A program made the translations under genes and the position numbers. 64,000 bases of DNA from Oculina patagonica (Eukaryota): the NCBI RefSeq assembly GCF_052425735.1, contig NC_135758.1, forward strand, positions 38,502,001 to 38,566,000. The letters run 5' to 3'. The notes under the pieces were generated by a model. The model was not told the DNA's origin, ran no database searches, and saw only the letters and a program-made list of their open reading frames with translations. Below are positions 9,446 to 47,584 of this stretch, in pieces. Positions within the stretch are counted from its first letter, which is position 1. Each line of letters starts with the position of its first letter.

Positions 9446-9529
9446 TGCGCCGCATAAAAAGCACGTACTACTAAAAGCTTTCTCTAGCCTAGAGTTTCTA
9501 CTGAGAGTTTCTCGTTGTTTCTTGTCATG

Positions 9530-10835: not shown

Positions 10836-12261
10836 CTATGAAGCGCCAGAGGTTTCGGTATTTGTAGAATGTTCGGCGTTTTCTGAGAGCCATTGCAGCA
10901 AGGTTTTTAATTTATTTGTCCGATTTGTTGGATCAGGACCCAGTCCTAGCACATTTCCAACATTTAACTTTTCTTGAAAATACTCCATGAGCTTACAATC
11001 CACGACGTATTCATCTGTTTGTAGGCGAGCCACAGCCTCCCTACGGAACTCGTCTAGCTGTTGTGTGAGAGTGCGCCCAGAGTCCAAGTGCGCTACAATG
11101 ATCTCTAACCCGAGGTCCGCCTCAGCATGCGCCCAGTCGTTGAGAATTTCATCTGGTGTCATTTCCATGTACCTTACCAATGGTACAATGTAAGGAAGGC
11201 ACACTCCTGGAAAAGGGCTGGGAGCTCCCGAGCTAAGGAGTCCAGCTAATGGTTTGAGGGTGCTGTGGTAGAGAATAGCTGTTGAGCAACACTGGTGATG
11301 GAGACATGACCATGTGTGGTGAAGCCGTGTTACCTGACAAGAGAGACCATAGATCAGTCCCGTGCACACATATAACTTGCGCGGAATTTGCGCCGAAATT
11401 TAACGCGGAAGGAAGAGAAACCGACAGGGTATAACAAACTATGCCATCCTCACGGAAATAGTCTTTCTTAATTGGTATATTTTATCTACATGATTTCTAT
11501 GATGTTTCAAATAACGTTTTTCAAATCTAACAACCAGAGAGTGATTTTCTAAATTCAGGAAGTTGTGTTATTTGCGTTTCGAACTACAAAATATCTGAGG
11601 TACACGGTAAAATCGTATTTTCAACATGACAAAGGTTGGTTTTCACTAGCAATGTTGTATAATGTGGGACAGGAATTATTCAGACAAATATTCTAAATGA
11701 CAAGCACTTCACGCATGAGGGTAAGAGCTATATAACGCATAACGCACAAGCTGAACAAGTCCTTTCTCGATAATTCTTTTCTCAGATAGGCCTCTGTTCA
11801 AACCCAACGCACTCGAACACGATCATTGATATATTCTTCTGTTGCACAAAAAGGATAGAAGAGAAAGAAGTAGTACCTGTGGTAAAGCGAGCCCTTCCAT
11901 GATAGCCATGAACGAGATGAGGTTGCCAAGTTTATCGCTCAGTACATCAGCCAGTTCGATGAGTTTACTGAGCACTTTACCCCTCTTACCCAGGTCACCT
12001 GCAGCCACAACTAGGGTCGCTACCCAGTGTGTCACGTTAGCAAATCTACAAAGGGAAAAAACGTTCATTTAATTATCACTGACGAGATGCATGTATGAAT
12101 TATTATAACGCATTTGGCATCTTACGCTTTTGTCCAAGTAATGGATGCAACCCCTTAGGAAGTCAATTTCTAAATCGCTAAATGACATGTAGAACTGTTG
12201 TCTTGAAACATTTGTCCCATGCTGGCGACGTCCCTGAAACCTGGCTTAGAAACACTCACGC

Positions 12262-12335
<74 letters not shown>

Positions 12336-15162
12336 GCTAATCATTACCAAGGAGAAGAGAAGAGGTTTGACAACAACACATCTTTAGAAAACAGTTTTTT
12401 TATATAAATGCTGACCTTGCCAGTAACTGGGCCCTTTTCTCTCTTCCTTGAGGGAGTGTCAGAATCTCCAAGCCTTTTGCTCCTCCAGTGCCGTCCTCGA
12501 TAGTCCAAGACTGGCGATGCGGCTCCTCGCCCCACTGCAATGCAAGATCCACGCGGGTCATATGTCTAGCGAGGGTAAGGCAGTCGCTCTCCAAGAAAGG
12601 CAAAAGTAGCTTTTCGCCTATTTTCTTCATCACATTTAAAAATATCCCCTTTTTGTCCATAGGCCCTACGCGCTTGGATTTGTCTTCTTTATCCTTCGGA
12701 CTCTCGACCTTGTCGCTGTCGTGGGTTGATTTTGAGGCCAGCACCTGTTCTGATGAAGAACTCGAATCGGTTGGGACGTCATATATCTCTTGGTTTGCAG
12801 GCGAGCCAAAGTCAGATCCAGAAGACGATGGACTTTTACTTTGCCTCGATGGAGGAGTAGAGTAGCACTCTTCAGACTCTAAATTGATTCCATCAGAAGA
12901 CGTATCGCGAGACGTGTCATGTCTCATCAACAACTCAGCGCCTGAATGTCTTTTCTCTGGGAGCGCGTTAAAACGTGGTTTTGAGCTGCCACCCGGTGGC
13001 AACCGTGAAGCTGCCGCGCCCACGGCGAAGGTTTGTAAGGCAGGTGCGCTGCATCTTGTTGTCAGCTGAGGACGCACCTTGCCGACTTTGTCAGACACAG
13101 TTGGATCTGAGTTTCGAAACGACTCCATCCTTTTGGGCTTGGCTGGGGGTTTGTCGTAAAGATCATCTTGGCTTCCTTTGGGTCTGTCATACAAACAGTC
13201 AGTACTGCCTCTTGGCTGGTCATAAAAAAGATTCTCTTGGCTGTCTTTGATGTTACCAGGCAGGCTAGCTTGACTAGATGGTTTGTCATAAAATTCCTCA
13301 GAACTATCCACAGTTGATGGTTTATCGTAAAAAGTTCCATTGCTACCATCTTCAGTAGGTTTGTCGTAATAGCTATCAAGGGGTTCCTCCTCGTTTAGTC
13401 CATCAGTTTTTTTGTTTACTTCATCAATTGTCATTGAAGAATTTTCATTTTCACTTGGTTTGTCATAAGTGTCATCCAAATTTTCCTTCTTATTAGGATC
13501 CTCATAAAAATGATCTTCTAAACTGTTCTTTTCCGCATGCTCTTCTTCGCTCTCTCCCAGTGGCGTCTCGTAGAACCTTTCTGAAATATTTTCATCTTTA
13601 GCGTCCTTCGGAAGGAACACGTCAGGAATTTTCTCTCGTTGTTTTGTCTGAACTGTCCATTGTAAATTTCCAGGTTTGGGCGAAAGAGAGCCGACTGTAA
13701 AGTGTCGAGTTCTATCTCCATTGTGATTGATCTCAAGATGCAATCCTGGGTCGCTATTCTTACGTCCCATTTTGTCGATTTTCTTTTGTCGCAAAGGCCC
13801 AGTACCTGGGGGTTTTGGCGGACAGAGGTTGGACGGGCCAGTATTGGAGACATACCTGTTACGATGATTTGCATTTAGACTTTTTAAGTCGTCTGAAGAT
13901 AACATAGTTGCATCCCGGCTGACGGCGTTCGTAATAACAGCTGGAGTCTTCGGAGATAACGGTTTCTTTTCGGTGATATAAAAGTTGATCAATTCGGCTA
14001 TGGAATCAAAACTGTTCGCGGAATCTTCCAGTCTATACTTTATCCTCGTCCCTTTCGACGAGTTCACTTTGCAGAGCGGTATGTGAACGGGCAGCCGTTT
14101 GTGTCGCACCACAATGAAACAGCTTCCAGGCTTTGCTGGGTCTTCACGTACCAAGAAGTTGCCGTCGCGACGCAGGTAACGCTCTGCATAGTCTGCCGTA
14201 ATCTTGCCATGATACCAAGTTTGCCTTTCTAACGGCAAGGAGTTTAGTGAGTCGGCATCTCCTTTTCCACGCCTTTTCTTCCTTTTCAAGAGGTCTGCTA
14301 ATCTGTAAAACAAAAGCAACCACACCATTTCAGTAACAGACCTTTTCACTGACTGGGATGTCACGCGACGCTAACAGACAGAAATGCAAACAGAAGCGTG
14401 ACGATCCAAAGAGACCCAGAAATATTTCGAGCTTTATGTTCAGTGTTTTACGTAATGCCTTTATCCCCAGTAGAATAAACAAGACCTATGACCCGAGGTA
14501 TACAACTCATAACAATGGAGCCATGCGCCAGCCGCCATAAACAACATCGATGTGGGCGGGAATGTTTCTAAAGTGATCTGTTTATCCCACTATGAAAGGA
14601 AACTGTGAAAGCCAGGAAAAGAAGTAAAAAAAATATTTCAAACCAAGAGCTGTTTATAAATTTCAGCAAAAAGTTTATTTATCTTACAGTGCTCATCCGA
14701 AATTTATCGCATTTCCTTGTCTGCTAAACGTATCCATTACAACTTTCTTGTTATTGCTTTGTCCAACATTAAAGTAAACAAGACCTCTGGGTTTGCGGTT
14801 TACAAGTTATGGCAGTGGGGTCTCCAGAACAACGTCAAATAACAATGATAACACCATTAGGAGCAGAGCACACAAATCAGATTGTACGCAGCGAGCAGCA
14901 AAAACGCGCGAGAGAAAAACAAAGGCGCGTGGCTTTTTCTTTCCCTCTACTCTTCGCGTTTTACACTGCTAGCAGATAATCCACGAGGCCGACCCCTTGC
15001 ATTCTACAACACATAACTACTAGAGCTAATAACTAACCTTCTGAAGGAAAGAGGCGATTTTGATCTGGATTCCTGAGAAATCTTTTTTTCGATCTTTACT
15101 TTAGCGGGTAGCGGCAGTGTCTTACTTCGGCTTCTGAAAGTACTCTGCGATGAAGACGACAT
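10836..15162 (-). CDS. BCAR3: NSP-family adaptor (BCAR3/SH2D3C/SH2D3A-like): SH2 domain, YxxP-rich linker, Cdc25/RasGEF-like domain; ~892 aa
   Basis: join(15038-15162, 12416-14302, 11877-12045, 10836-11333), all GT/AG, phases 2,2,0, 2679 nt. SH2 motif WYHGKI…DGNFLVRE…FDSIAELINFY. NSP-type GEF-like C-terminus: LARHMTRVD, GLEILTLPQG, LGNLISFMAIMEGLALPQVTRLHHTW, GLEIIVAHL. Probably co-orthologous to BCAR3/SH2D3A/SH2D3C. Confidence 0.9.
12262..12335. repeat. (ATTG)n microsatellite, ~18 units, intronic
   Basis: Directly visible perfect tetranucleotide run. Confidence 0.97.
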
Positions 15163-18100
15163 GGTTTACTTCTTGCTTTCGTTCGTAATTGTCAGCTAAC
15201 CGCCTCTCAGGAAACTGCAAACAAAGTTAAACAGAGAGTACATTCAACTAAAGATTCCAAGAAAATTCGTGTCATGTAAGAGCATAAGGTATTTCATAAA
15301 TCGCCGTAAGTAATCCTTTGTGTATGACGCTGCCAAAAATATTCGCCCTTCTTACACGGTCTAGCAACATCAATAATTCCGCCTTTAAGAAGAGTATTGA
15401 AGCAAAACAAACCACGAAATACTCTGTCTTCTAGAATCATCTAAGGCATCTTTTTCTCTCTGTGTTTTTCTCTTTTGCTTTGTTTAGTTAAATCTCCAGT
15501 GTGACTTGAGTGAACAAAGGATGATAATTTCTATGGTAACTTGCGTTCAATCATCGCGTGATGTGTTAAATACTCTGAGTACCAGTAGGAAACTTGAACG
15601 TTCTTCTGCAAATCAGAAAGGTTTTTTAAACCACTTAATTTCCAAAACCAATTAAAACAATAGATTTTTCCACACAATCGTACAATATCGATACATTGTC
15701 TAACACACAGATGATAAGACTGTTAGAAAATCATCAACCTGTATTTTAAGGGCACAACTTTTAACCAACTTCTCAGAATTACAATCAGTTCACAGTATTT
15801 TGAGCTCACATCTCAAAGTATTAGAGCAACTTATATTAAACTTTGCCAATCTGCCGTGATATTTTTACCGCTAAAGACTTTATGACGAAAACCCGACCAG
15901 ACGGCTTTGTTGTCAACGGAAGTTTTTAAATCTCAGCATAAGCTCTCTTCATATACATTATCCCTGTCATTATGTTACTTAAGCCATGAAAAAGCCAGAA
16001 ACAACATTGCATTTGTATTCTAACAAACTGACATGTTGAAAAGCCTTTAAGTTTGATTTACGAGAGTTCTGAATATAAAAATACGACAAAGGTCCGTCTA
16101 TGAAAGATTGTGCCATTAAAAACTTCACATAACTGGTTTCCACGGTGGCGTTATTTTAAGCGATTGATTTACGTGTGTAAAATATAAATATACAAAAAAG
16201 TTTGGACGGCTTGTGACCTTTCAATTTTTTTTGCAAACTCAAGCATTTTTTCTTTGTTCTCTATTTTGTTTTAACCTCCTAAATTACGCACGAAAAATAA
16301 CGCGCAGTGGAAATCAACCCGGGAAATCGCGTTGATTTCATCAAAACTTTCAGCAATCCAAACCATTCTACAGTAATCGCCGGTTGTTTCCCAATTCGTA
16401 CTTTTTGACGTAAGGAAATATTCTCGTTAATACGTCAGTTTTTCCGCTATACAAATAATATATAAGCCCTGGCCGGAACTTGGTTAAGATATAAAATGAT
16501 CATGTATCCTAAATAAGTCCCAATTACTTTATATGAAAGAAGATGGGTGAAAAATACCTGTTTGAAATGACAGTACGGTGAGAGACGCATGAGCGAATAG
16601 TCAGATCGTACTACTACCCAGCTGTGCTGACGACAAGAAAATAATTAATCACCCACACATTTTAGTTGTTAAGACAAGGCGTGAAAGCATTTCACACCCT
16701 TCCGAATACTCTCCTACAGTCATGGTTCGCTAATCCAACGCGAAATGAACGTGACATACGACAGGAGGGTTTTTCCTTTTTAGTCATCAATAATCTCTCA
16801 ACAAGGTAGGAAAGTAACACTTAAAATTACTGCGGTCGGATACCAAGCACAGTAAGAATTTATTTCTTACTTTAAGCTACCTGATGATCTTTGAAGATTT
16901 TGTGCTCATTCAGCTGTTTCTATTCTGGTAAATAATCCCTTGCTTTCAATAAAATATTCACTCTGAACTCTGATTTTTCTAACGAGCCGGCGAATTTATG
17001 AAGCACTCGGAAGTTTGAACTCCACAGATATTTGAAGAACTTGCCCCGAGGTTACACTAAGAAACTTCTTCAAACATTCCTGTCTAGACAACCTTTACAA
17101 AATCATATAACTCTACTCATATACATCTGAATAAAAGATGACACTGCTTTTATTACTTGGACTTACTACGACCGGAAGTGACGTATTCCAGCGGTTTTTT
17201 GGTTCCTTTCACTTGGTAATAAGCAGCATATGACTAAAAGTCTTGACCGAAATTTTCTTTTAACAAGGCCAGACGGCTAAATATTCTCCTGCCTGATTAA
17301 GAATTCTGCAACTGTGAAAAAGCCAAAAACTTTGCCCTGCCCTTGTATCCTATTACTGACTATTACTTCTTATCATACAAAGAATTTCAACACAAAAACC
17401 AAGCAACTAATCACATCTCAAGTGCTGACCGAAGTCGTTAGCAAGCACACGACCTTGGTTTTCTTTTGCACGACGACGTTTGTGAACCGAATCGACAATG
17501 ATTTATATCACTTCGCTTCAGAAACTGACAATTATTGATGTTCTACGAGCAATTTGCATCTAAAGTCGGCTTAATGAACCCACGCCAGTACTTACTCAAC
17601 ATTATTTATAGCCTGAAGTTAATTGCCTTAGTTTGCCCTCGCTTTCCTGAACTGAAACCAAAATCAGGCTTATAAACTTTCGTCCAAGGATACAATTATG
17701 AGTTATTTAACTACTAAATGATGTACATTAGTTAATTCCTCCAAAACAATGATTGCATACAGAATACGAAATGAACTCAATTAAAACAAAGAATATGGCA
17801 ACCTAAGTACACAATCAAAGGAGAGAGAATTCGGTTCATAACGGAGGACTGTGTAAACATGTAAACGCATCTTCTTAGAGACGAATATAAGAATTTTAAA
17901 CAGTTATAATCAAACTTATGCTCTTATATTCTACTCAATAAGAAGCGACTGGAAGGTTTTTTTGTCGTCAAAACAGAGGGTGCCGTATGGAGTATTGGCA
18001 ATCACTCTTTGTTGCATACATTTCACACGGGAGATTACAAAACGCTCAAGTTATACCGCTGTGTTTTGCATTAAACTTCCATGAACGAGCATGTGCTCGC

Positions 18101-18350: not shown

Positions 18351-18531
18351 CTTGAATATGCAACATAATCGTCTCTTTGCCAGCCGTAATAAACAGGATC
18401 GATTCAATGCAACGCACGATTGATCACATAAGAAGGTTTACGCGGTTAATAATAGAACAATAGTGATTGGTGCAATTCAATACGGCTTTGTCACTCATCA
18501 GTGATTGGTGAAATACAATACCGCTTTGTCA
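18351..18531 (-). promoter_or_regulatory. Putative non-coding first exon and twin-CCAAT promoter of the BCAR3-like gene
   Basis: Strong minus-strand donor AAG|GTAAGA at 18351/18350. Acceptor TTTGCAG just upstream of the ATG exon (~15215). Two CCAAT boxes in a 38-bp-period duplication at 18462-18531. Confidence 0.45.
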
Positions 18532-20537
18532 GCGCTATGTCTGCTCAACACGGCTGCGAGGTGCCGAAAGTTCTAGAGGGGTCGCGTCATCCCGGTAGAA
18601 AGTAAGGGAAACACAACAAACGTAAAAGTTTGACGTAACCTTCCGCGTTTCAACTTCTCGAATCCAACTCACATATCAACTGGGAGCGCCCAGAGTACAG
18701 AATCTAAACAATGCGCACAGTTTGATACTACTGCCTCGGGGAATAATTTGTTAATTTGAACTTATAGTTATCAAAGTTTTGATGCTCCCGCCTAAACACG
18801 TTTTCCGGCGTTTCTTTGCTCCGATTTTCCTTGCTTTTGTTTAGTGCTAAGCCTCATTTGGTCTCATTTACTACCACATTTGTTAAATGGCTATGCTTGG
18901 ACACTCAAAGGCAGTGCGGTTGACATACATCGAGAAATGCGACGTGACATAGTTCAGTGCTCAAAGAGCGAGACTCTTTCATTGATCGTACAGTATTAGT
19001 CGTTCATTTAGTAACACAGGGGGTCTTGGAAATTATATAAAAGCGCAAATGAGCTACAAGGTTTTCTTTATTGTGGTAATTTACGCTGTTGGGCCGATTC
19101 TTTGCAGTTCAATAGTGCACAAACACGAATTAAATTTTCTCAGGGACCTTTGCCTTAGGTGTTGCCTGCTTTCTCGGGAAGGGTGAAATTGTCGCTACTT
19201 ACGGACTTTCGTAACGTAGTCCCAGGATCTAGGAACTTACATCCCTCGGTTTCTTGTGGCTTGCAATTATGAATTAGTCGCCGCCAATGTATGGGCTGGT
19301 TTGTCGGTGTGGATCACCATTGGATTGTTTGTGGTTTTTATCGATTTTTGGACCTGCCAAAACAATAAACAAACAATAAAAATCATACACTTGCAATGAT
19401 TGATGGGAATCGTAAATTGGCTTCCTGGTTCAACGAGTTTTCACAAAATAAAAGACAAACAAAACCTTAGCGGCTTGACATCCGGCCGACGGATAAAAAT
19501 ACGTTTGAATTTTAATTTGGAACAATACAGGAAAAAAAGGTGAGGCGGTCAAGAGCCGGGATGTGTGGTCAGAAACTTGTTTTGAAATGGAGAAATGGTC
19601 TAGACACTACGCCGTGAACAACGTGAACTCCGCCAACGCAGCAAGTCCGTTCCTAGGGCCCTAGGGCCTCTGATCTTCCAAGGCTAATGGGTGATCTCCT
19701 TATGTTTTTTAGTCTACAAATTTTAAAGCATAATTTTTATTTTGGTTACAACAGCGTTCTTTTGATTCAGCTAGCAGGTAAATTCGTCACTGAAGCTGGT
19801 GATCGATGTCTACAAACTAAATCTTCCATAGCAACTAACTCACAATTCGGGCGTCTTCATTTCCTTTCGGAACAATTGAAATGTATTGAATAGTTGTAAA
19901 GCAATATATTAATCTTTGTACGTGAGAGCGGGCTTGCCTCAAAAGATAGGATCGTGATCTCTTGGTCACCTTTGTTAACAAAAACTTGATAAAAAAGACA
20001 AGTCCTTAAGAAATAGTCAACACTGAATGGTATCGCATTTTGTGAGAGATCGACGGGTAATCAGTCAGGAACACATGCTAATACCGTGTTGGCACAGACC
20101 TCAGTAGTTTTTCTTGGGAGAACTCGGATCAGATCGCGAGCAGTCGAGAGTTTGTGGCTAGTCAATCGCGCAAAAAGCGAATACCGTTAGGAAGTGAGAG
20201 AATAATGTATCCTGTGTACAGCCGTCCCACTCCGCTTAAAAAAATGGCGCGGCGCGAAAATTCGTTCCCGCCAAATTTCAACGCTTTGCATACGAACCAC
20301 CAGCGCGGTTTTTCTTTTCTCGCTCGACGGAATAGCGTATGTGTGCTGTTTATCGTCATTTCCTGTCTCTCCTTGACTCCTCAAGTGTAAAACGTGGCCT
20401 GCTAAGAATGCAAGGCCCTCTTTTGGATCCGGCAGTAGAGCTATAAAATGGGGTAGATGGGGCGCTCCATTCCCTCTGTGTTCGCAGACTCCACACACTT
20501 CGATACTACGATAACAAAGTTGACCACTTGTGCGGTC

Positions 20538-20762
20538 TTACTTGCTTAGATTCCAGGTACCGATCCTTGCTGTCACCTTCCGGCTGTCGGAAGGGGCTTT
20601 GGCCACCTGGCTTAGAGCCGGTTTACACAAAATTTCGGAAGCCTTGTAATCCCTCGGTGGCGATTGGCCAAGGAAGATTTCACCAGGTCTAAAGAAGCCC
20701 CTCTCCATGGGGCCATACTTCACTCTGGGCTTTAGGAGGCCTCCAAGCAGAGTAGCACTGTT
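20538..20762 (-). mobile_element. 5' remnant of an RTE-type non-LTR retrotransposon (5' leader plus start of the APE domain)
   Basis: The ORF ends …SQVAKAPSDSRKVTARIGTWNLSK*. IGTWN is the first motif of RTE AP-endonucleases. The leader is GC-rich and structured. Confidence 0.55.
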
Positions 20763-20763
20763 A

Positions 20764-20985
20764 GGCTGTGTTCACACGTGGTGCCACGGCACGGCGCCCG
20801 AGTACGATTCTTGGTAGGCCCTTATGTGAACACGCTATTTTTTGTGCCAGAATTCGGGCACGGGCATCCTTGCCGGCTCGGGCCCCTACGTCGACCTTTG
20901 GTTTTCTGTGTCTGAACACTACGATATTTTTTGCTGGTGCTCAGGCACAAAGTGTGAACTCGCTGAGTATCGCGTCTTGCGCATG
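20764..20985. mobile_element. Partial PIF/Harbinger-like MITE
   Basis: Begins TTA|GGCTGTGTTCACAC, with internal tgtgaacac/gtgtgaac subrepeats. Right TIR not seen. Confidence 0.45.
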
Positions 20986-21062
20986 GACACAACACGACCC
21001 CGGCACAGGGCTTCAACCGAGAGATTTCGATCCGGAATTCAACGTATCAATCATAAGTCATC
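20985..21062 (-). mobile_element. Degenerate tRNA-derived SINE head
   Basis: Minus strand reads …ttccggatcgaaatctctcggttgaagccctgtgccggggtcgtgttgtgt: a B-box-like GGTTGAAGCCC followed by TGTTGTGT. Confidence 0.4.
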
Positions 21063-22901
21063 CCAGAAGGGTCTTTGGACAAGGGAAATATTCAGCCAAG
21101 AGTAAAGAAGTAGTCGTAAACAACACACATCACACACTTTCAGGGTAAATTTTAATTACTTCTGCAATTAGATACTCAGTCGAGCTCCGACTGTTACGCC
21201 TAGCTAGCTAAGACTACATTCAATAGTGTCTATAGTGTATTTATATCCACGCAGTGAGAAAAGCTGCCGCTCTTCGCTTTCACTATAATTTCTTCTTTTT
21301 AAAAAAATCTTGTCCTTTATTTCGCGGTAAAACGTATTTACTAACCAAAATCAAACAAACACAATTACCAAACTACAAAATAAATTGCTGTAACATATTT
21401 TCATATATTGTTAGGTTATCTGGATATAAAACTTGAATTTTTCTCTATTTTCTCATATTGACGCACAGGTGCAGCAATAATTGGCTTAAGTAGACTTTGC
21501 CAGTGCGGAATATTGCAACGTGGATTTAGGCCAAACAATAAAACTTTCTTGACATCAATTCTTTGAATAGCAAACTAAACAGTAACCGAAAATTTCAGTC
21601 GTCTGACGTGCGTTTCTCGAAAGTCCCGATGACTGTTTCGGGCCCGAAAAGGTGCATTGCTCGCAAAATGTTTATCTAACAACGACCCAGTTTTTGTTGA
21701 GTTTAAAAGCGAGAAATGAAATACTACGCTCACGAAACATAAAGGGCTGTTTTTCTTCTTTTTTTTTGCCTTAAACGTCTCATTGAGGTTGGAGGTTTCG
21801 ACCCGAAATGGCTTCAGAAGGCTTGAGGAACGCACGCCTGATCTCTTCAACCCACATCTCGGGATTAGAGTCGAGCAGACAACAGTCATTCCAGGCTAAC
21901 AAAGCAGACAGAAGAAGGTAACACCGAACATATAGATATTGGTTAACACAATGCCATTACTTTACTACACCCAATAAATTTAACAATGTTGAATAAAACT
22001 ACTAATTGGTGACATGGAAATAAAATATTCTCGTTAATTATAGCCGCCGTCACAGCCGTTATAACGCATCGTTATGTAACAAAGAAGCGTCACATAACGA
22101 CGTTTTCGCGTTATCTCGCGACATAAAACTCTGCAGCGTTATTCCTTTACTAGGGTCGCAGAGGTTGTGCGCGTGACCATCCCTCTTAATATTTTTCAAG
22201 TCATCTGCACGTGAAATCCAACTTTAGGGTCTTTACGGTTAAATTTGCAATCCAACAGATATTCCCCTCACACTGCCCCTCAATCGAGGTTGAATATTGT
22301 TAGCCTACAATTCCATTCAAGCAATAACCTGAGAGACGTCTCTCTAGAGCTCCGCGCGCTCAATTCTTCCCCCATGACAGTAACATCCGAGATTCGACCC
22401 CAAAAAATCAATATTAATTATTAGTTGAGCTCGTCACTAATGACGAGTTCTACAGAAATCTGTCGTGTCTCGGATTTACTTGCGCGCCGGCGCGAACATT
22501 CAACCCGAGCAACAACCCATCAGAGACACTACAAGAAGCTACGTCATCAGTCATCCTCGTCCCCAGGTACTATTCCGCTTTAAAGATGGCAACTGGACAG
22601 TAGAACCTGGGTATCGATGGGTACGAGGTTGGTCATTAGGGAATTTTTTCGGGTCAAAACTCAAACGTCACTTAGGTCCAGCGGGACGAATTGAGCGCTG
22701 GAAGAGCAACGTCTTATTACCCAAGCTTTTCAATAAACTATTTCATATTTCTTACCTACAGGACACAGTGCCGTCTTTAATCAAGTAACAGGAGAACGGC
22801 CTTGTCCATATTGGCTTTCCTTGAAACTTTTGAACATCCAATTATTTCCCAGATTGGGCAGTGTAGTTCTATTAATTTAGTTATTAGTGATTCAGGGCTC
22901 T

Positions 22902-27625: not shown

Positions 27626-27657
<32 letters not shown>

Positions 27658-30600
27658 GGTTCTTATTGCGCAAAATTCTCATGCGCACAGATAGGATTAA
27701 AAGGATAAAAACGATAAAAGCAAGAACGATGTTAGATACAGAAATTCAGTACTAAGAAAAAAAGAGTAAAAAATATACCTGGGTGGATTACTCCCCTATT
27801 CTGAAAACTAAAGATTGACTTCACTGCATTTTTGGATCATATCGACTTGACTCGACTTGTCTCGCCATGCCTCGCCTTATCTCGTGTCGCATCGTATCGA
27901 CTCGTCTCCTGCACTTAGTTTTCTCTTCTTTCGGGTTTACCTCGATGTAGTTAGAACCTGTGATGTTTTTCTGTTTTGGAGCTATGGTTTTCCTGCTCTG
28001 TTTTGTTTTGAGGTTCTTTGTTGTTTTGGTTGTTATTTGTTTTACCTCACCGATAAATTTCACAATCGCGTTGCAAGTTGCAACTGACATGTCACATGCA
28101 GCAACTTGTCTCGCAACGTTGCGAAAAGTAAAAGACAGCTCTTCTTTTCTTGCAACTTGCAATGCAACATTTTGTTGCGTTACAGGATGCAAAAGCGGTT
28201 GCATTGCAAGTTGCAAGTAAAATAACCAGTGTAACATGGCCTTTAATGCTGATTGTCTTTTTAAACATTTTGTCACCCAGCTTAGCTTTTACAGTTTTTC
28301 TTTGAAACTTATTAATGGCATTATCCATTATTAAATGTACATTTCAGATGAAATAATTTGATGTTCTTATTATCAGCTCACATACCTGCGGTCCATCGAC
28401 AGATTTTCCATTACCCTTAATGTTATCCAGGCATTTTTGTATTATAGGCATAATTTTTGTCTCTATATCAGCATACTCTACCAAAAGGTCACCAGTTCTC
28501 TGTATTCTGCGTTCATCCATTTTCTGTAGTTCCTGGAGATTTAGGCATGGAAAGTAAAAGTTGCATTAGGAACATGAAAAGGTTAAGTCCGTTCCTCTGG
28601 TTTCTTTAACATGAGGTGACTAGAAGCCTTGTTTCCCCCCTTGGATGGGATACTTGCCCATTGCAGGTTAACAATAAGTATGAAGTATTGCTGTACAACA
28701 GTTAAATTCATTATTTGAATTTTGACTTGCCCTTTGGGATTGCCAAAATTGTACAAGGCTTGATGATACACACAAAAATGTCCAATAAAATATACGTATT
28801 GTAAGTTGATGACAAATACTGCTGGTATACATACATCAAACACTGCTGGCATTTCATTGCTGTAGTGCAAGGTTTGTTTGCTATTTGTCTGTTCCAGCTG
28901 ATTCCTGTAATCTTCCCTTGCTCTCTCGCATGCCTGACCTTTCTCCATTGATATAGTTTTGTACTAAAATACGTAAACAAAACATTGTTATTATTTTTTG
29001 GAGTATACCCCACAGGACATTCGACAGAACAATAATTGTATTATTTCCACAAACTATATGTCTTATGTCCACTACAAAATTATTCTTGAGGACTTTCAAA
29101 AATTGAGGAAATTTCTCAGTTGTAATTCTTCCACATAATGGATGGTGAAGCAGCAACAACAGACTAACAAAGGGTGAAACTTGGAGCAGTGCGTCCCTCC
29201 AGCTTGTACCCCACATGACTTCTGTACCTACGACACAGCTGTTTCCTCCGTTGCACTTACCCCTCCTTGGAACTCATGTCTTGATTTTGGATGGACAATA
29301 TTTTGCAAACCAAGTCACTTAATTTTGATCATTTTGTGAAACTAATTAAAGATTCCACCAGCAATTTTGCAACCTTTAAGCAAAATGCAAAAATGTGATG
29401 TTGCAAAAAATACCTTCATGACAGTCTATAAATTAAATTTAAAAACACCATTTCTTTTACCTTTTCAATCTGTAATCTAGAATTAGCCATGTCTTGATCA
29501 GCTTTCTGGAAGGCCTGCAATGCTTGGTCAGCTTCTTCACTTGCCTTCATAAAAGATCTTTTACTCTAGAAGGAGCAAAAATACAACAATGAAGCTTTTC
29601 TATACCAGGAGCAGGGAGCAGGGGGAGGGGAGGGGGCGGGGGGGAGGGCCCCCCCCCCCCCCAATGGGCCGGGGGGCTTCCCCCCCCCCCGCGTTTTGGG
29701 GGGGTTTTTTTTTTTTTGTTCCCCCCCCCCCCCCGGTTTTTTCTCCCTGTTCCTCTCCTTCCCCCCCCCCAAAAAACCCTTTTTCTCCCGGGCCCCGCGG
29801 GCGGTGTCAGGAATTCCCCAAAAAAATTATCATGTCATTTATTAAAAGTGTTTGTGATGAGAAAGTTCTCAGTCAAGCTTTATTATTGCTACATTAATTA
29901 CTTGGGAGAGTTAATGTATACAAAGTTGATTAGGAGCAGTAGTTGCATAATTATCCAGTGGATAAGTCCCTTTCAGTGTATAAAATTTCAAATGATTGTA
30001 CATGTTGTGGTTTTTTTTTTAGTTCAAAATTTTTCAAACCAGTTTGATTTTCACATTTCATTGTCTCATATTCATTATCATAATCTGAAACAATGAGAAA
30101 TAAAAATCAAACTGGTTTGAAAAATTTTGAACCAAAGATAAATTTAAACCACAACATATACACCAACTTATACAATGTACAGTCAACTGCCGATAACTCG
30201 AACCTTCAAGGGAAATTGAAAATGGTTTGAGTTATCGGGAGTTCGAGTTATGGGAAGTTGAGAACAAATGAATGGAAATAAGGAAAAAGCGGTGTTGACT
30301 GATTTTCCATCCATACAGTGTTGACCAGTGTAAATTTTAAACAAATTTAATTTGAGTATAGAAAAGCCAAAAGAAAAGGGAACAATATATTTCTACATCA
30401 CTGTTTAAACCAGAACGTGACGTAACATAAAACAAAGCGAAATCAGCTGCGAACGCTGTAGGTTTCAAAAAGAACAACACTATAGGCTGCTGCTGCAGAG
30501 TTTATGCAATTTACTTTTTGGAGCAATGGTCAATTAATTCGTCCTGGCGTTTTCTAAGGTTGAATTTAAAGGAATAGGTATAAACCTCCACAAACAAACT

Positions 30601-33600
30601 GAATGTCTGTAGCATGTAAAGCTACATCAATGGCGTGGCACAGTTTGTGTTTTGAGGGGCGTTTTGGGAACGTCTCTGACACGTGTACATTTTGTATTTC
30701 AAAATAAATAACAATGTTTTGGGCTACAGTACAGTAAATGTATGAAATCGATTTTGGTTCGGGTTAGCGAAAGGTTTGAGTTAGCGAGGGTTTGAGTTAT
30801 CAGAAGTCGGCTGTACAATCATGAAATTTATGCTGAATTAAGTTATCTGCTCTTGGAATAATGATGATGATGATGACAATGGATATATATTATGAATAAT
30901 TATTAATAATTATCTATAAACTCTTTTCTTCTCAAGAGTTGGAAAACAGACTTTTTCCATGGAAACCACATTTTGCACTTCTGGAAATTCATCTTAAAAG
31001 AGTTGATATGTATTTTCTGTATTAAACAGAATAATTATTAGCTCATTCTGCTTACAGCTTCTAAAGCTTTCATTGACTGGTCTAAGAGTTCTTGAACTCT
31101 CTTGCCCTCTGAAAGATGCTGAAATGATAGAAAAAAAAAAACAGTAAGTTAACATATCATCTTTCAATATGTTGATGTTGCCAGCAAATATGATTAAAAC
31201 TATAGGTATACTAAATGGTCTGCCATTGGAGTATGCAATTGAGTAGTGAAGTGCAGGTAATCAAGTCTAACTCTTTTCTTTGTTTTGAAAACAAAGCATG
31301 GATAACACTTTTGTTAAATGTTACAAAAACCAACTGTTTCAGGTTGAAAAGAACAAAATGATGATACATTATGTATAATCTTGGTAGAAATATATTAAAG
31401 GAGATATTATTCAGTGAAATCACAGTAACCAAGCTTAAGGTCGCGCAGGACCCTTGAAATCATTATGTATGTATTTATTTAAAGAGTATGCACGAACTGC
31501 GACGACTGAAGCTGACAACAAACAAAATATTCATGAGAATTTTTTTTCTCAGAGTTCTTTGTACAAGTAATTACACGGTATTGTTCTCAGCCTCGCATCC
31601 CGTGCACTGGAACATAGTGAATTATCATAATTAGATTCACAGCTTTAAATAAAGCACACGTTGTTGTAAACATCGACTCGGAAGGTCTTCGGAAGCCTCA
31701 AAACCTGCAATTTTGTGTCCAAGTTTTCTCCGCCGATATAGAATTTCAAGAGTTGATTCGCGAGGAACATAAACTTGGTGTACTCTATTGTGTTCTGGCT
31801 AGAGCGAATTTTTAAATTTCCTTCTCAAAATGAAGAGAGCATGTTTCAAAGTTTAGATTTCACATTTTTACTCTCTTAGAAGCCATTAACTTGTAGCAGT
31901 TTTTGAAATTGAAAATTTCGTTCTAGTGGGAACACAAAAGAAGTTACGATTTATCACTAGGCTATATAATCATTTAATTTGGTGCGCTGTGCTAGCTGAA
32001 AACTTGGACACAAAATCGCATTATCTTCAGTTAAACTTTTAAGGGCTTGTAACATCACAGACAACGGTCATCTTTCAGTAAAAGGACAATCATGATGTAA
32101 TTCCATCATCCCTGGGTATCCTTATTAAATTTTAGAGGAATCGATATTCAAAATGTAGTGAATTAAAGCTTTACAAGACAGCACTCCAACAAGAAATTTG
32201 GCTAATGAATATATTAATGAGCAAGGGTCCTGCGCGACCTTAACATACATTGTACCATCTTTTCTGTCCTTCCACACAATTTCCAGTAGTAACAAAACTA
32301 ATCCTAGCAGCATTAGGGCTCAAAAAAAGTGTCGTCCAGTATTCCAGGATAAGTAGATTTAACAACTTGAAAGCATTGTATTGAAAGTACCGGTAGTCAC
32401 AACTTATCACCTTTCAGTCATCAACATTTGGAGGGTTGTTAAATAAATCTACAAAATTTCCATGCTCAAATAAGACATGCACTGTACCTTTCTCCTGTCA
32501 GCCTTCAGTTCAGTATGCAGCAAGTGCAACTCCTTCCATATCTTTTCTATTAAAGTCTCTGATATCAGCTCATGTTGACCTGCCAAATCATCTGTCTCTT
32601 TCACTACACCAATAAAAGCTTTTTGAAATGTAAATCTGGAAATGGTGACATCCATATAATCAGTAAATACTGTTACAACCAAAGGATAAAGAATATGTTA
32701 ATCACTATCTACAAATGTTTGAACTATGACAGTTTTCCTAAGTATCTTAAAGACATGCTTACTTTGCGTCAGTCTGAATACTCTTTAAGAGGAACTAATA
32801 TTTTATCACTATGTAAACCTGTTACAACTACTTATGGCCTCAACTCTTTTCGTTATTTTGCATCTAAGGCCTGGAACTCCTTACCTAATAATGTAAGATC
32901 TGAACCTACTTTAACTGGTTTTAAAAGACTCCTAAAAGGAATCTCCTTTCAGGCATAATGGTATATCTTAACATTTTTTTTTTTTTTTTTTTTCATGTAA
33001 ATAGATGTAAATAGATTTTAAATGTAAATTTTCATTTTTTCAATTTTTGTTTCTCGAAGATATTAGCCTTTTTCAGGCTACTCTACAATTCGAGTTTAAA
33101 TAAAGTTCATGTTATGTTATGTTATGTTATTTGCATCTAAAGTGGAATCCCGATTTTGCGAACCTCCCAATAACTCAACCCAAACGTTGTTTCTATTGGA
33201 TTTGCCTTATGCAATTTTATCCTGGATTTTTCAGGTGAACCTACCGGTAATCGGAAGAATAGCGACAGAAGAGCGCTATATTTCATTCAGGATTGCTTTT
33301 GGTTAGCTCTTACTTGTTGGTTAGGGTAAGCTTTCATATTGCCCAAACAAACAAATAAAAGCTGACCAAAAGCAAACCAGGGTGAAGCTAACCACAAGCA
33401 AACTGCGGTGAAAATTAGTGCCACTCAGTCATTCCTGACACCATTCCGCCGAATAGGGTCACCGGATTTTTCAAACTCTTGAATTCTCAAACCAATTTTC
33501 GTTTCCCTTGGAGTTTCGCCAAATCTAGATTCCACTTAACCACTTGGTGCAAATTTTATTATATGGCAAGCACTTCTCAAGCTGATAAATTAAGTTCTTT

Positions 33601-36600
33601 CACTGGATTTTTCATTATGGACCACAGCAATGTTGTCAGTGTACAGGAGATCAAGGAGTAGCCTAGTGTTTTTATTTAGGGATCTACAGAGGTTTCTGAA
33701 AAAGTCTTGAGACATTCTCCAGTTGTAATGTTCCCAAATTGATAAACATTCAGGTTACCTTTTGAGTATCTTTTGGAATCAGGCACAATCAACTTACTTG
33801 GGCTGCGATGATACATTTTTTCAAGATACAATGTACAATGCACAACTCGATACAAGCGCCATGATAAGATACACACATGATACATGACATGAAATTTTTT
33901 ATTTTCATTCATTATGAAGCTAGCTAGCATGCTATGAGAAGTGAAGTTGCCACAAACTGAGTTTGGTTCATGGGCACACAAGGCTGGGTCAGCTGACATT
34001 ACTTAATTATTGGAACTATACTATGCATGCATTTGTGCCACCATCTTGAAAAATTTATCGTTGAAAGCATGCAAAGCAATATGAAGCAAGGATGGAACTT
34101 TTTTAATCCTGTTGTTTAAAAAGGCTTGGATTTGGGTAAGGAGTCATTAAAGGCAGTAACTTCTGAATATTGATAAAAAAATATTTTATTGTTCACCAAT
34201 GTGTGGTACCAGAAAATGCCAATACCCCCCCCCCCCCCACAGAGGGGATTGGAAATACATGTACCTGGGGGTAAGAGGGGTCTCAAAGGCCAAAAAACTT
34301 TAAGGAAATGTATGAAGGTTAATTGGAATTTCCAGAGGGGTTTGGGGGACTTCTGTGGGGGAGGTATGAATAATTTATGAAACTACACAATATTGTGATA
34401 AATTATGTTGTTCAAATATTGAATGATATTCATATCACTGCAGTACTACAACTTACGGATATTCTTCCTCCTTTTTCTTTGGGCAAAATGTCTTGGCTAG
34501 TTTTCTGTGAAGTAACAAGAAAAGATTGAATGTAAAATGAACCTGAATGCAAGCATAATGCAAAGTGCCTCCCTCGTTTAACATACGTGCACACTTTAAG
34601 GCTGTCATTAAGTTTTTAAGCAGCTGTTACATTGAGGTTACCACCCATGGATTGCACTTCACTCTGTATGCAAATGAAACATAACAGTCGACATCTTCAC
34701 CCACAACACTGAGTGAACTCAGCCATAACAGGTGTCATGTGTTATGGCCCTTAATGACAGCCCTAAACTTGGTCCTGATTAACTGATTAACAAGTTAGGG
34801 CCCGGACGCACTGGGCAAATTTTTGTTTATTTTGCGAAAAAATCTGTCACCAGTTCCGTGAGACAAGTGCGCCCGGTGATTTTCAGATCTACCAAATTTT
34901 ATCAAGCCTTACCAAACTTCAAAGGCGCCGTCGTCCTGCCTCGGAGCAGGACAAATTTTTGTCAAGCGCCAAATCTGACAGATTTTTCAATTAACACGCC
35001 TTAATCTATAGGAAAACGTCAAACAAGTATTTTTGATCTCGCTTTTCAAGGCAGATTTCCGCCAAAATATTTTATTTTTTCTCGACAGTTCGACATGGAG
35101 GACGGCAGAGATACATACATACATACAACAACTATAATATATATATGGCTCGCAAATCTTCTTTCCATTACACCTCCGGTATGCAAGTACTCCTGGCTTG
35201 GCACAATTTTCAAACCGCCCGAGTACAAGTACCGCTGCTGATCAAAATGAAAGCGCGGCGAGTCAAGACTATTGAATTGTACTAAAAGCGAAAAATACGG
35301 CTCTTATCGGCCGGAAAGTGAGACTCTTTTTAGCGAACGGAAAGTTATCGAAGGTGTACGGTTTTAACATGATTGACACTTTGTGGTTAACAAATAATTT
35401 GGTGTTTTCAAGTGCGTCCACGATTGCCAAATTCAAAATTTGGTAGAGACAAAATTTGTCGAGATTTTTGGTAGAGCCAAACAAATTTTGTCAGTCCAGT
35501 GCGTCCGGGCCCTTACAGGAAATGTGCATTAGGCTTTAATTAATACACATATTTTGTAATTGCAGCCCTCCAAGTTAAGACCATTTTAGTCGCCACGGCG
35601 ACTAAAGTTTTGGAGCTAGCGACTAAATTTGAACCAAGGTCGCCAGCCTGGCAACTCAAATTGAGAGGAATGATTGAAAGCATCAGTTTAATTTGGTGAC
35701 TAAAATTTTTTCACTGGCGACCAAAACTTGAATAATAATTAATAATAATTAATGGACTTATATTGCGCAAGTATCAATCAAGGATTTTCACTTGCGCATT
35801 ACAATACAGTAGAACCCCGTTAACTCGAACTCGGATAACTCGAACAACCCCGCTAACTCGAACACACTTCCATTTCCCTGGGATTTGAACTCACTTTTCA
35901 GTCATTTTTACTCGGTTAACTCGAACTCGGATAACTCGAAAACCCCGCTAACTCGAACTAAATTTTGTTTCCCTTGATCAAAATTTGGGTCAAATTTACC
36001 CCGATAACTTGAATCCCGGTTCTTGCAACTCACACCGGTTGCCCATTTATTAGAGTAACAAAACAGATCACGTATTTGACAGCCTTTTTCCACTCTTATC
36101 CTAAGAATTTATGATCTTGTTAGAGTTTCTGACGAGATTTTTCTGTAAAATTAGTAAACTATCAATTATTAACTTGGCAAATTAAATATTCAATCTACCC
36201 CGATAACTCGAAACCCCGCTAACTCGAACGGTTTTTCGTTTCCCTTCAAAGTTCGAGTTACCGGGGTTCTACTGTATTTATAAAAATATAAATTACTAAC
36301 TGGCCCTAAAATTAATAAAAATACTAAAATACATGATAAGTGTAAAATTATATTCAATAAAAAATAAAAATTAGCTTAAAAACGCCTTCTGAAACAAATG
36401 AGTCTTACTAGTTGGCGGCCAAATGGCCACTAAGGAAAAAAATAAACTTGGAGGGTTGAATTGCATTTATAATGTTATTTTAATTCTTAGGCATGTACAC
36501 CGGTAGATGAAATATTTTGCACGTAACTGAGAGGAAATACATTTAAATTTTCAGGAACCAAGTAACCTTTATTTTTGGGATAACTTGTCGAATACAACAT

Positions 36601-38894
36601 GCAACAAACATTTGGTGCCACAATTCAAATGCTTGTTATATCTGAGGTGTCTGACTGCTTCAAAGCATGAAGCAGTTTTAGTTACGTTACAGTTGCACTG
36701 CTGAAACCTGTACATGTTAAACTGGATTTTAAGAGATCATGCCTTACTTCCAGAAATTGACAGTCAATACCTTAGCTGTTTTCCTTTTTTTAATTAAGTA
36801 ATGGATGAACTTAGGAAGTTGGGCGGGCTGTAGGTTTAGCTCAATGGCCCAACCCTTATGCATCTCATTACTCTCCCAAGAAAAAGAACTCAACAAGAGG
36901 TGACCATATTATCTGTTGCACTGTCTTTTTTGTTAAAGAATGATCTTGTTGTGACATGCATATCATATAGCTAAAAAAATAATAATATAAAATCACTTTT
37001 TTGGACAACATTGAGGAATACTGATCAATGCCTCAAGAAAAGTGAAAATTAAAGCAAATGGAAGAACTTGAATGTGAAACATGTACACATTTCTGTTTCC
37101 AAAGCTGCATTAACTTTCTGTTTAATTCTGTGTAACTTAAGGAGGGGGACATGGGGGCACCCTGAACAGTGACCGCAACACCACAAAAATAATACACAAA
37201 CACTGCATCACTGCAAGAAAATTTGACGAAACACTGTCGCCGCAATATAGTCAAGTTACTTTTGAATGAAAACGACTTGCTATTGGCAGCTAAAGTGTAT
37301 TAATGATCAACTAGACAGTATTTAACTGTATTTTGCCACAAATTAAACATATGGTATACAACAGCTGTATGTTGTATATGCTAGTATTATAAAGGACGGA
37401 TTAACGAAGAATAGCCGAGCTAAATTTAGTTCTGCAATTGTCAGACGAGAAACCGTAACACCGCCAATAATTTCGCTTCACTGAACACCGTAGGTTTAAA
37501 TAACAAAAACATCGCACGGTATTCTGGAAGGTCATGGGTTCGACTCCCGTTGGGAGAACTCAGAAAATCTTTTTTCCGCTTCTTCATTTACTGGTTCAAT
37601 AAATCCCTTATTTGATGGTTTAACATATAATACGAGCAGACACTTAGCTCATTGCTCGTATATATTTTCTTCGCCCCTATGGGGCGAGGAAAAATACTAC
37701 ACAACTCACAAAATATCCGCCCGTATTATATGTTAAACCATCGAATAAGGTGTATGAATTTAACATGCAAATGATGCAAAAATCAACCATGTGCAGTGTA
37801 TGAGGAAATGAACTCCCTAACACACTAAAACTCAACAGGTTAACTGGAGTCGACTGGAAAATAAATAAACAGATTTTGATCATTTTCTCCCTAAATCAGT
37901 TTACAAGGGAGGAAAAGATAAAAACATTTTTGGAGTACTGCTGGCTTGGTTGTTTATATTTTGAATATTTTAATACTACTCACTAACAAATGACACTTTG
38001 ATGTAAATTACATTAATGGATTGAATCTGTCATGTTAGTCTGTTTGTACACAAAAGTTTTATTATGTCTGGTAAATTACTATTTTCAAAGAAAGACGATT
38101 TTAAATCACAACAGGCCAAGTCGAAAAGTGAAATTTGATGACTCTTTACTATTAATTTATCATGCTAACCTATTAAAAATCAGCTTATATGTCATGCCTT
38201 AAAATTAAAATTTGTCGCTGTTTCTATCCGTTCCATTGAACACACATGGCTCCCTGGATTTTGCAGAAATAGTAAACATCCCATAAAACGGAGGATAATA
38301 TTTCTAAAGAGCTGTTACGCACATGTAAATAGAGAAATCTACGCATGTATGAACGAAAATTATGATTATTAATAACACCAATCAGCTGTCTGGGGTGAAA
38401 CATGCTCACACCGAACAATAGCAGACGTTTAGAAATCAAGTTTTGAAAACACAAAACGCGTAGTTGCAGTAAGATTTTCTAGACATTTCATTTATACTTC
38501 ATAAACGTCAAGAATGAATGAAACTGCACTTAGGCAATATACCAGCTGTTCTTGTTACGGCATGGATAATTTCGATTTCGTAAACTGAAATTCCACCAAA
38601 ACCCTGCCTTACCTTAGCTCCTTCGCATATCGCGATTCGATGTCGCTCCTTTCCTTTACGAACTTTGTTACCTTATCCACGAAATCGATTCCAGAACTCG
38701 TGTGGTTGGCTATAAGATCAAACTGGTCCTAGAAGCCAAAAGAAAACATGAGTAAGATATTCAACTCTACACTTCAACTGTGAATATCGTGCATGTCCAC
38801 TGATGTCGGATTCGAGCCAGGCGCAAGCTGCGACAAAAACAAGCGAGCAGTCAAGCTCTTGATCGCTTACCCAAAGTTCTGTTCCCCAGGTCAT
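22902..38894 (-). CDS. FNBP1L: CIP4-family F-BAR/HR1/SH3 protein (FNBP1L/FNBP1/TRIP10-like), 13 coding exons, ~528 aa
   Basis: join(38871-38894, 38613-38728, 34457-34504, 32488-32635, 31056-31118, 29461-29565, 28835-28963, 28386-28532, 26896-27066, 25175-25293, 24343-24475, 23703-23943, 22902-23044) = 1587 nt, phases consistent. Diagnostic start MTWGTELW|DQFD. Also [12 protein letters not shown]1 ([18 protein letters not shown]) and SH3 ([17 protein letters not shown]…GWTKV…EGYVPSAYI). Confidence 0.93.
23350..23483. mobile_element. Hairpin-type interspersed repeat, intronic
   Basis: Inverted arms atataacaaacacgagaaacagtgtttcat…atccaaacac and gtgtttggat…atgaaacactgtctcgagtgtttgatatat. Confidence 0.6.
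24644..24818. mobile_element. Tc1/mariner-pogo MITE
   Basis: TIR CAGTCAACTCTCG / CGAGAGTTGACTG with a TA duplication on both sides. Confidence 0.85.
24951..25108. other. Assembly gap (N run) inside an FNBP1L-like intron
   Basis: Run of n. Flanking exon phases (2/2) are compatible, so no exon needs to be missing. Confidence 0.99.
26532..26669. mobile_element. Hairpin MITE (TAGCCTGCGAGCAGGCTCTCT TIR) with ~8-9 bp TSD
   Basis: Perfect 21-bp TIR. ttctatcg occurs on both flanks. Confidence 0.8.
27835..27910. repeat. Degenerate pentamer repeat (CTCGN/ATCGN)n
   Basis: atcgacttgactcgacttgtctcgccatgcctcgcc…atcgtatcgactcgtctc. Confidence 0.6.
28066..28242. mobile_element. Right half of a Harbinger-like MITE rich in TTGCAA palindromes
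   Basis: Repeated ttgcaagttgcaa. Ends gtgtaacatggcct|tta. Confidence 0.5.
29998..30161. mobile_element. Hairpin MITE; partial second copy at ~57770-57865
   Basis: tgttgtgg…ttcaaaatttttcaaaccagtttgattt mirrored by aaatcaaactggtttgaaaaattttgaa…ccacaaca. Confidence 0.7.
30180..30813. mobile_element. pogo-like non-autonomous element, CpG-decayed
   Basis: TA|CAGTCAACT…GATAACTCGAA at the left end and TTTGAGTTATC…GTCGGCTG|TA at the right. Internal (tt)cgagtta subrepeats are partly mutated to ttgagtta. Confidence 0.75.
32670..33129 (+). mobile_element. 5'-truncated L2/CR1-group LINE (RT C-terminus, 3' UTR, (ATGTT)n tail), antisense in an FNBP1L-like intron
   Basis: IYKCLN…PKYL…YSLRG…[22 protein letters not shown]…FKRLLK is a typical LINE ORF2 C-terminus. 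It is followed by stem-loop ctcgaa…ttcgag, AATAAA and an ATGTT repeat. Confidence 0.88.
34599..34763. mobile_element. Short MITE (GGCTGTCATTAAG TIR)
   Basis: ggctgtcattaag … cttaatgacagcc. Confidence 0.6.
34798..35512. mobile_element. PIF/Harbinger non-autonomous element
   Basis: TIR GGGCCCGGACGCACTGG / CCAGTGCGTCCGGGCCC with a TTA 3-bp TSD. CpG-rich, so probably young. Confidence 0.88.
35731..36407 (-). mobile_element. L2/CR1-type LINE 3' end ([17 protein letters not shown] tail) nested in the hAT-like element
   Basis: Minus-strand AAG ACT CAT TTG TTT CAG AAG GCG TTT TTA AGC TAA from 36406. tgcgca stem-loop and (ATT)n tail at 35731-35800. Confidence 0.7.
35807..36274. mobile_element. pogo-like MITE, young, nested in the LINE tail
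   Basis: TA|CAGTAGAACCCCG…TAACTCGAAC and GTTCGAGTTA…CGGGGTTCTACTG|TA. CpGs intact. Confidence 0.9.
37515..37590 (+). mobile_element. tRNA-derived SINE fragment
   Basis: gaaggtcatGGGTTCGACTCCCgttgggagaactcagaaaa carries a B-box/T-loop but no full cloverleaf. Confidence 0.6.
37606..37750. mobile_element. Hairpin MITE
   Basis: ccttatttgatggtttaacatataatacg / cgtattatatgttaaaccatcgaataagg. Confidence 0.75.

Positions 38895-47545: not shown

Positions 47546-47584
<39 letters not shown>

Follow-up and report, generated by a model that had tools for sequence, protein, structure and literature searches.

It is well established that both microsynteny and macrosynteny have been conserved from cnidarians to vertebrates. 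In the human genome, FNBP1L and BCAR3 (1p22.1), and likewise TRIP10 and SH2D3A (19p13.3), are convergent neighbour pairs. Each pair joins a member of the TOCA/CIP4 family to a member of the NSP family, which is usually discussed as a vertebrate cancer-signalling family. In this study, we analyzed a stretch of 64,000 nt from the coral Oculina patagonica (~38% G+C; assembly of 529 Mb), hereafter called the window, in which one gene of each family is present. The TOCA/CIP4-family gene (hereafter TOCA) encodes F-BAR, HR1_TOCA and SH3 domains in 13 exons, and its coding sequence spans 22902..38894 on the minus strand. The NSP gene (BCAR3/SH2D3-like) is placed directly downstream on the same strand, from the ATG at 15162 to the stop codon ending at 10836, and is composed of four coding exons and additional non-coding 5′ exons. 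This adjacency is probably an ancestral linkage that is older than the cnidarian-bilaterian split and is the same as that kept by vertebrates; we infer both that the cnidarian and vertebrate adjacencies are homologous and why they were retained. If the linkage is ancestral, it is one clean addition to the few hundred neighbour pairs that have survived since before the cnidarian-bilaterian split. It reveals no new mechanism. The NSP adaptor family itself is dated to at least the cnidarian-bilaterian ancestor.

The adjacency of the two vertebrate pairs, which a preliminary description of this sequence had given, is borne out by published work. On sheep chromosome 1, FNBP1L is located at 69,805,549-69,915,406 and BCAR3 at 69,930,328-70,015,474 (PMC5919745). 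Furthermore, mammals, non-avian sauropsids and amphibians are described as having RDH8/TRIP10/SH2D3A "immediately syntenic" in the interval from C3 to VAV1 (bioRxiv 10.1101/2024.05.16.589954). The presence of the adjacency in both paralogous pairs dates it to before the vertebrate genome duplications. The coral locus resembles the human pairs in that the same two families are adjacent and the 3′ end of TOCA faces NSP. It differs from them in orientation, the vertebrate pairs being presumably convergent and the coral and Nematostella pairs head-to-tail. It also differs in copy number: vertebrates possess three paralogues of each gene, whereas the coral possesses one.

The closest described class of gene pairs is that of the conserved ancient microsyntenic pairs (CAMPs), for which Irimia et al. 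2012 (Genome Res 22:2356; PMC3514665) give conservation in at least four major lineages as the criterion. Like CAMPs, TOCA and NSP are non-paralogous neighbours in distant lineages, occur together in more than one vertebrate paralogon and are separated by a short intergenic distance. In contrast to the 5′-5′ arrangement that dominates the strongly constrained CAMPs, the coral and vertebrate pairs are tandem or convergent. The TOCA-NSP adjacency is seen in Scleractinia and Nematostella (both Cnidaria) and, from the papers, in vertebrates, and one further organism (L010, described below) has the two genes with another between them; the loci covered here come from fewer than four major lineages. 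Irimia et al. do not mention the pair in their main text, and it may be listed in their supplementary material. Searches of the main texts of the literature for FNBP1L and BCAR3 with synteny, or for FNBP1 with microsynteny, did not find it treated as a conserved pair.

The assignment of the two genes to the CIP4 and NSP families in the preliminary description is confirmed by Pfam domains and by matches to structures in the PDB. The 13 TOCA exons are joined by GT-AG introns throughout, and their translation is exactly P0161 (528 amino acids, Oculina patagonica). The A of the ATG codon is position 38894 and the stop codon lies within the last exon, ending at 22902. The exons, all on the minus strand and all matching P0161, are located at 38894-38871 (exon 1), 38728-38613 (exon 2), 34504-34457 (exon 3), 32635-32488 (exon 4), 31118-31056 (exon 5), 29565-29461 (exon 6), 28963-28835 (exon 7), 28532-28386 (exon 8), 27066-26896 (exon 9), 25293-25175 (exon 10), 24475-24343 (exon 11, which carries HR1_TOCA), 23943-23703 (exon 12) and 23044-22902 (exon 13, stop codon included). 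When single exons were compared with Pfam, HR1_TOCA (PF25610) was detected in exon 11 at 4e-17 and SH3 at 4e-9, together with a weak FCH match. The last exon matches SH3_9, SH3_1 and SH3_2, and the protein ends three residues past the SH3 domain. In the full protein P0161, FCH (PF00611), HR1_TOCA and SH3 are all recognized. The best PDB matches of the sea-anemone orthologue P0084 are the F-BAR domains of FBP17 (2efl, 2e-51) and CIP4 (2efk, 6e-48), and P0084 also matches the HR1 and SH3 domains of CIP4 and TOCA1. Thus, the hallmarks of the TOCA/CIP4 family (F-BAR, TOCA-type HR1 and SH3) are all present in the predicted protein, and Cdc42 binding is a prediction from them.

There is a run of N (24951..25108) inside TOCA intron 10 (25174-24476), and therefore the length of this intron is uncertain. 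Exons 10 and 11 join in frame across the gap (…QLKNSR|EGMEKM…), and at this junction the protein runs collinear with the homologues from Actinostola and Nematostella, with zero residues missing. Therefore, no coding sequence appears to be lost in the gap. Downstream of the stop codon, a motif scan found AATAAA at 22781, and 22760..22901 (minus strand) is probably a short 3′ untranslated region.

When the whole genome was searched with the HR1_TOCA profile and with an F-BAR exon, this locus alone was returned; thus, TOCA is a single-copy gene. Vertebrate FNBP1 and FNBP1L cluster together in the TOCA tree (100/100), with amphioxus and Ciona outside this cluster, and the cnidarian sequences form a group of their own. 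This grouping makes coral TOCA pro-orthologous to the vertebrate paralogues sampled, FNBP1 and FNBP1L; the tree is without a genuine vertebrate TRIP10. The homologue list was saturated with fish FNBP1 isoforms. As far as this tree goes, it would fit one ancestral gene that was later duplicated in vertebrates.

The NSP gene has four coding exons with canonical splice sites and encodes 892 amino acids. Exon 1, the first coding exon (15038..15214, minus strand, as are the others), contains the ATG at 15162 and matches the N-terminus of Stylophora SH2D3C. Exon 2 (12416..14302) encodes the SH2 domain (Pfam PF00017, 1.2e-11, residues 52-131 of the exon 2 open reading frame), a long linker that is rich in Ser and Pro and contains repeated YxxP, and the beginning of the Cdc25-like domain; it is 55-94% identical to coral NSP proteins. 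Eleven YxxP motifs are present in the linker at 12770-13575 (minus strand) in the exon 2 translation, for example FYDKP, LYDRP and IYDVP. Exon 3 (11877..12045) encodes the core of the Cdc25-like (RasGEF-fold) domain, matches Pfam RasGEF (PF00617) at 1.1e-9 and is 95% identical to P0020. Exon 4 (10836..11333) encodes the C-terminal half of the same domain and the stop codon, and its sole PDB matches are BCAR3 (3t6a, 1.3e-14) and SH2D3C (3t6g, 1.8e-11). With the C-terminal domain of the Stylophora orthologue, the PDB matches are BCAR3 at 1.5e-28 and SH2D3C at 2e-25, as compared with 3e-5 for the next RasGEF, Epac2. Thus, the SH2 domain and the NSP-type Cdc25-homology domain, which are the hallmarks of the NSP family, are both present, and the protein is a putative Cas-binding adaptor with a putatively inactive guanine nucleotide exchange domain. 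NSP is also single-copy in a search of the whole genome. This status, together with the nearly equal similarity to BCAR3 and SH2D3C, suggests that the coral gene is pro-orthologous to BCAR3, SH2D3A and SH2D3C; the homologue search with the C-terminal domain covered anthozoan sequences only, and did not provide vertebrate NSP sequences for a tree. A perfect (ATTG)x18.5 microsatellite is present in NSP intron 2 at 12262-12335.

The same gene order was found in other cnidarians. In a related coral (L001), the NSP exon of which is 85% identical, collinearity extends from the last exon of TOCA across NSP. In two further coral contigs (L011 and L012), NSP follows the last TOCA exon at a distance of 8-10 kb, on the same strand. 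In Nematostella, the TOCA paralogue P0166 (L008 10001-17292, plus strand; FCH, HR1_TOCA and SH3) is followed, 5.1 kb away and on the same strand, by P0275 (22402-26572), a protein of 706 residues with SH2 and RasGEF domains that is named as a BCAR3 homologue. The adjacency predates the coral-Nematostella split. A second Nematostella paralogue, P0158, is located 1.6 Mb off on the same chromosome. P0166 and P0158 are sisters in the tree (99/97), and therefore TOCA was duplicated in the Nematostella lineage. Nematostella thus possesses both a linked pair and a duplicated TOCA without an NSP neighbour, and is a natural control for the effect of adjacency on expression. In the tree, the branch of the copy next to NSP is much the longer of the two (0.61 vs 0.22).

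We also scanned metagenome loci using SH2 motifs; most of the 65 loci recovered are unrelated SH2 genes. One contig of 16.8 kb (L010), which comes from a third and clearly different organism, carries an NSP gene at 2515-4924 (minus strand), a WD40 gene at 7300-8364 (minus strand) and a TOCA gene at 8736-10271 (plus strand). In this contig, NSP and TOCA are 3.8 kb apart and divergent, with the WD40 gene between them. The TOCA gene is intronless and encodes 511 amino acids. The NSP gene encodes SH2 and a Cdc25-like part with SH2D3C and BCAR3 as best matches, and has a coral-like exon boundary. The organism is a gene-dense compact eukaryote with ~7 genes in 17 kb, and a possible SAM-domain open reading frame (5763-6164) is present just upstream of NSP. 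We considered whether the WD40 gene corresponds to the PRP4 gene beside TOCA in Nematostella, and this idea was dropped because there was no tblastn match to the Nematostella locus. Another locus (L016) carries a divergent NSP gene and, 8.8 kb upstream of it on the same strand, a terminal SH3 exon. This exon shares its intron position and C-terminal ending with TOCA, and it is not TOCA-specific by PDB search. The mudskipper FNBP1 locus has no neighbour within 10 kb.

How probable is a chance origin of these adjacencies? We estimate that, with random gene order, a given pair would be adjacent in a given genome with a probability of ~1e-4, and that the same adjacency would arise independently twice with a probability of ~1e-4 to 1e-3 per pair. 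These estimates favour a single origin, as does the age of the adjacency within both clades, which precedes the coral-Nematostella split in one and the vertebrate genome duplications in the other; the 3.8-kb spacing in L010 points in the same direction. Nevertheless, several observations weigh against an ancestral linkage. Anthozoa and Vertebrata are the only named clades in which the adjacency is documented, and the deep node rests on these two plus L010. The orientation is not common to the lineages: it is tandem in anthozoans, convergent in vertebrates, and divergent with a WD40 gene between in L010. In the sea anemones Actinia tenebrosa and Exaiptasia, there is no NSP sequence within 10 kb of TOCA, and the gene downstream of TOCA encodes a G-protein-coupled receptor or a major facilitator superfamily transporter. 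Nematostella P0158 likewise has no NSP within 10 kb. Among vertebrate sequences, the tree evidence covers FNBP1 and FNBP1L but neither TRIP10 nor NSP. Finally, each genome contains thousands of neighbour pairs, from which we estimate that a few chance adjacencies shared by coral and human are to be expected genome-wide, especially within macrosyntenic chromosomes.

Several of these points, together with the literature searches described above, in which the pair was not treated as conserved, would be explained if the adjacency had arisen separately in an early hexacoral and an early vertebrate, perhaps aided by the presence of both genes in one ancestral linkage group. Because many neighbour pairs were read and the two genes probably belong to one conserved linkage group, such a coincidence keeps some weight, and we consider it rather unlikely. 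The proposal that the pair predates the cnidarian-bilaterian split stands in part: corals, Nematostella (a tandem pair) and tetrapods have the adjacency, whereas Actinia and Exaiptasia do not show it within the range covered. According to the ancestral-linkage reading, TOCA and NSP would have been kept together twice after the vertebrate genome duplications, as FNBP1L-BCAR3 and as TRIP10-SH2D3A. Their persistence would be mainly passive, through slowly rearranging genomes and a very short spacer that offers few neutral breakpoints. Any contribution of shared local chromatin or cis-regulation would be modest at most, with no strict regulatory lock.

Open reading frames in 15.3-22.9 kb gave no match in Pfam, and searches of the window found no tRNA and no Rfam family. 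Contigs from public sequencing runs were mapped to 14801-20800; the run type (RNA) was guessed, and the contigs were taken as RNA-derived because spliced forms were seen. They define a major non-coding 5′ exon of NSP at 18351..18738 (minus strand), which is covered by a contig of 388 nt. The joint from 18351 to 15214 was found in runs X1 (depth 426) and X4, and is bounded by CT..AC on the plus strand, that is, GT..AG on the minus strand. A minor, alternative non-coding 5′ exon (16558..~17200, minus strand) is joined from 16558 to 15206 in run X1 only, at a depth of 11, with a GT donor after 16558. The splice between NSP exons 1 and 2 is represented by a loose end that encodes ADLLKRK in X1, X2 and X4. 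Among raw polyA reads (X22), almost none matched this stretch. Because the NSP 5′ exons lie upstream of the ATG, the true distance from the TOCA stop codon to the start of NSP is no more than ~4.2 kb, and the intergenic spacer between the 3′ end of TOCA and the transcription start of NSP (18739..22759) is no more than ~4 kb. There is no Pfam, tRNA or Rfam match in this spacer. Thus, as first described, the BCAR3-like gene lies directly 3′ of the FNBP1L-like gene in tandem with no gene between, and part of the interval is occupied by 5′ exons of NSP itself. A spacer of this size in slowly rearranging genomes is enough to explain the survival of the pair.

The region at ~20.0-21.1 kb of the spacer is repeat-like and GC-rich, and fails to align with other corals. 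Pile-ups of very high summed depth were observed at 20201-20249 and 20600-20800 in three runs, with inconsistent or unrelated flanks, which points to either a dispersed repeat or an abundant small RNA-like element at these sites.

The preliminary description had proposed a further explanation, namely that the adjacency survived an inversion under regulatory constraint, and had pointed to 15.3-22.9 kb as a place for conserved non-coding elements. In this explanation, enhancers or a shared chromatin domain would link TOCA to NSP, possibly on behalf of the adjacent homeobox gene described below, and breaks would be selected against. Some features of the locus are in accord with it. The NSP promoter is within ~4 kb of the 3′ end of TOCA, and the gene that directly follows NSP on the same strand is a developmental homeobox gene. 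Two of the three vertebrate paralogous pairs have stayed adjacent; the third, FNBP1 and SH2D3C, is located at 9q34.11 in human with the two genes ~2 Mb apart, and we count this separation as weakening the constraint. Other corals align with the window over 15.6-19.1 kb at 74-77% identity. However, NSP intron 1 and the downstream flank are also aligned, with an identity in the same range, and therefore 15.6-19.1 kb is not above background; moreover, this stretch is partly NSP 5′ exon and promoter. When the Nematostella locus was compared with the window by blastn, only coding exons aligned, plus one repeat fragment, so that the expected conserved elements did not appear at this distance. A 57-bp match (79%) between the region upstream of Nematostella NSP (L008 22286-22341) and TOCA intron 3 was rejected as a candidate, since it is a fragment of a G-run repeat and not a conserved element. 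In Nematostella, the neighbour downstream of the pair in the old annotation has Ank and ubiquitin domains and is not a homeobox gene. Irimia et al. 2012 (PMC3514665) ascribe many conserved pairs to cis-regulatory constraints, and report that the strongly constrained pairs are mostly 5′-5′ with conserved orientation, unlike TOCA and NSP. Given the variable orientation, the loss of the adjacency in two anemones and the absence of deep non-coding conservation in the coral-Nematostella comparison, the case for regulatory constraint is weak, and we judge this explanation improbable.

On the minus strand, the order of genes in the window is aminotransferase (45451-44141), TOCA, NSP and a paired-like homeobox gene. 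The homeobox gene is aristaless-related: its homeodomain exon at 1074..1373 (minus strand) matches Pfam Homeodomain at 2e-15, possesses Q50, and has ALX4, Aristaless and PRRX2 as its best PDB matches. Its last exon lies just past the low end of the window (L079 9396-9806, minus strand) and encodes WFQNRRAKWRK and an OAR-like motif. The gene adjoining TOCA on its upstream side (44141..45451, minus strand) is intronless and encodes a class-I aminotransferase of bacterial/plant type (Pfam Aminotran_1_2, 1.5e-55), whose best PDB matches are Thermus aspartate aminotransferase and plant prephenate aminotransferase; its G+C is ~0.50. In Actinia tenebrosa, a homologue of this gene (437 amino acids, 57% identical; L077 1683-2993, minus strand) lies 7 kb upstream of TOCA. 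Both junctions are present in Oculina, and one each has been retained in the anemone lineages, TOCA-NSP in Nematostella and aminotransferase-TOCA in Actinia; by parsimony, the order aminotransferase-TOCA-NSP was probably present in the hexacoral ancestor. The aminotransferase gene is a candidate for an old bacterial or plant-type acquisition in hexacorals that marks the ancestral locus.

The presence of the homeobox gene invites comparison with genomic regulatory blocks, in which the two adaptor genes would be "bystanders" beside a paired-like homeobox gene. The locus differs from such blocks in that deeply conserved non-coding elements are not found between coral and Nematostella, and the linkage of the homeobox gene to the pair is seen in the Oculina window only. 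At a larger scale, the window links TOCA, NSP, Prrx/Alx-like homeobox and DDR-like receptor genes, whose human relatives are on chromosomes 1, 6p21, 9q34 and 19p13, and it thereby resembles the major histocompatibility complex (MHC) paralogon group (1/6p21/9q33-34/19p13). This resemblance suggests a wider ancestral block around TOCA and NSP, in keeping with known macrosynteny. In contrast to the pair itself, the paralogon is a well-known chromosome-scale linkage and is not evidence on immediate adjacency.

A more speculative form of this idea is an ancestral metazoan micro-block composed of homeobox (Prrx/Alx-type), NSP and TOCA genes with a DDR-type receptor nearby, which would survive piecemeal in the human MHC-paralogon regions and be held together by homeobox regulatory DNA in or near the adaptor genes. 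Its human pieces would presumably be PRRX2...FNBP1 and SH2D3C at 9q34.11, with PRRX2 ~0.2 Mb from FNBP1, FNBP1L-BCAR3 at 1p22, and GPR108-TRIP10-SH2D3A at 19p13. If true, the micro-block would be a regulatory block older than the cnidarian-bilaterian split; we regard it as very doubtful.

Exons of the DDR-like receptor gene are present at ~57200-63000 (plus strand), with matches to F5/8 type C (7.6e-9) and to the DS-like domain of DDR1/2 (1.5e-34); the kinase part of this gene would fall beyond the window. Finally, copies or fragments of a repeat with runs of G/C are found at 34197-34253, 29550-29834, 39790-40126 and 47490-47770, and yield poly-Gly and poly-Pro open reading frames.

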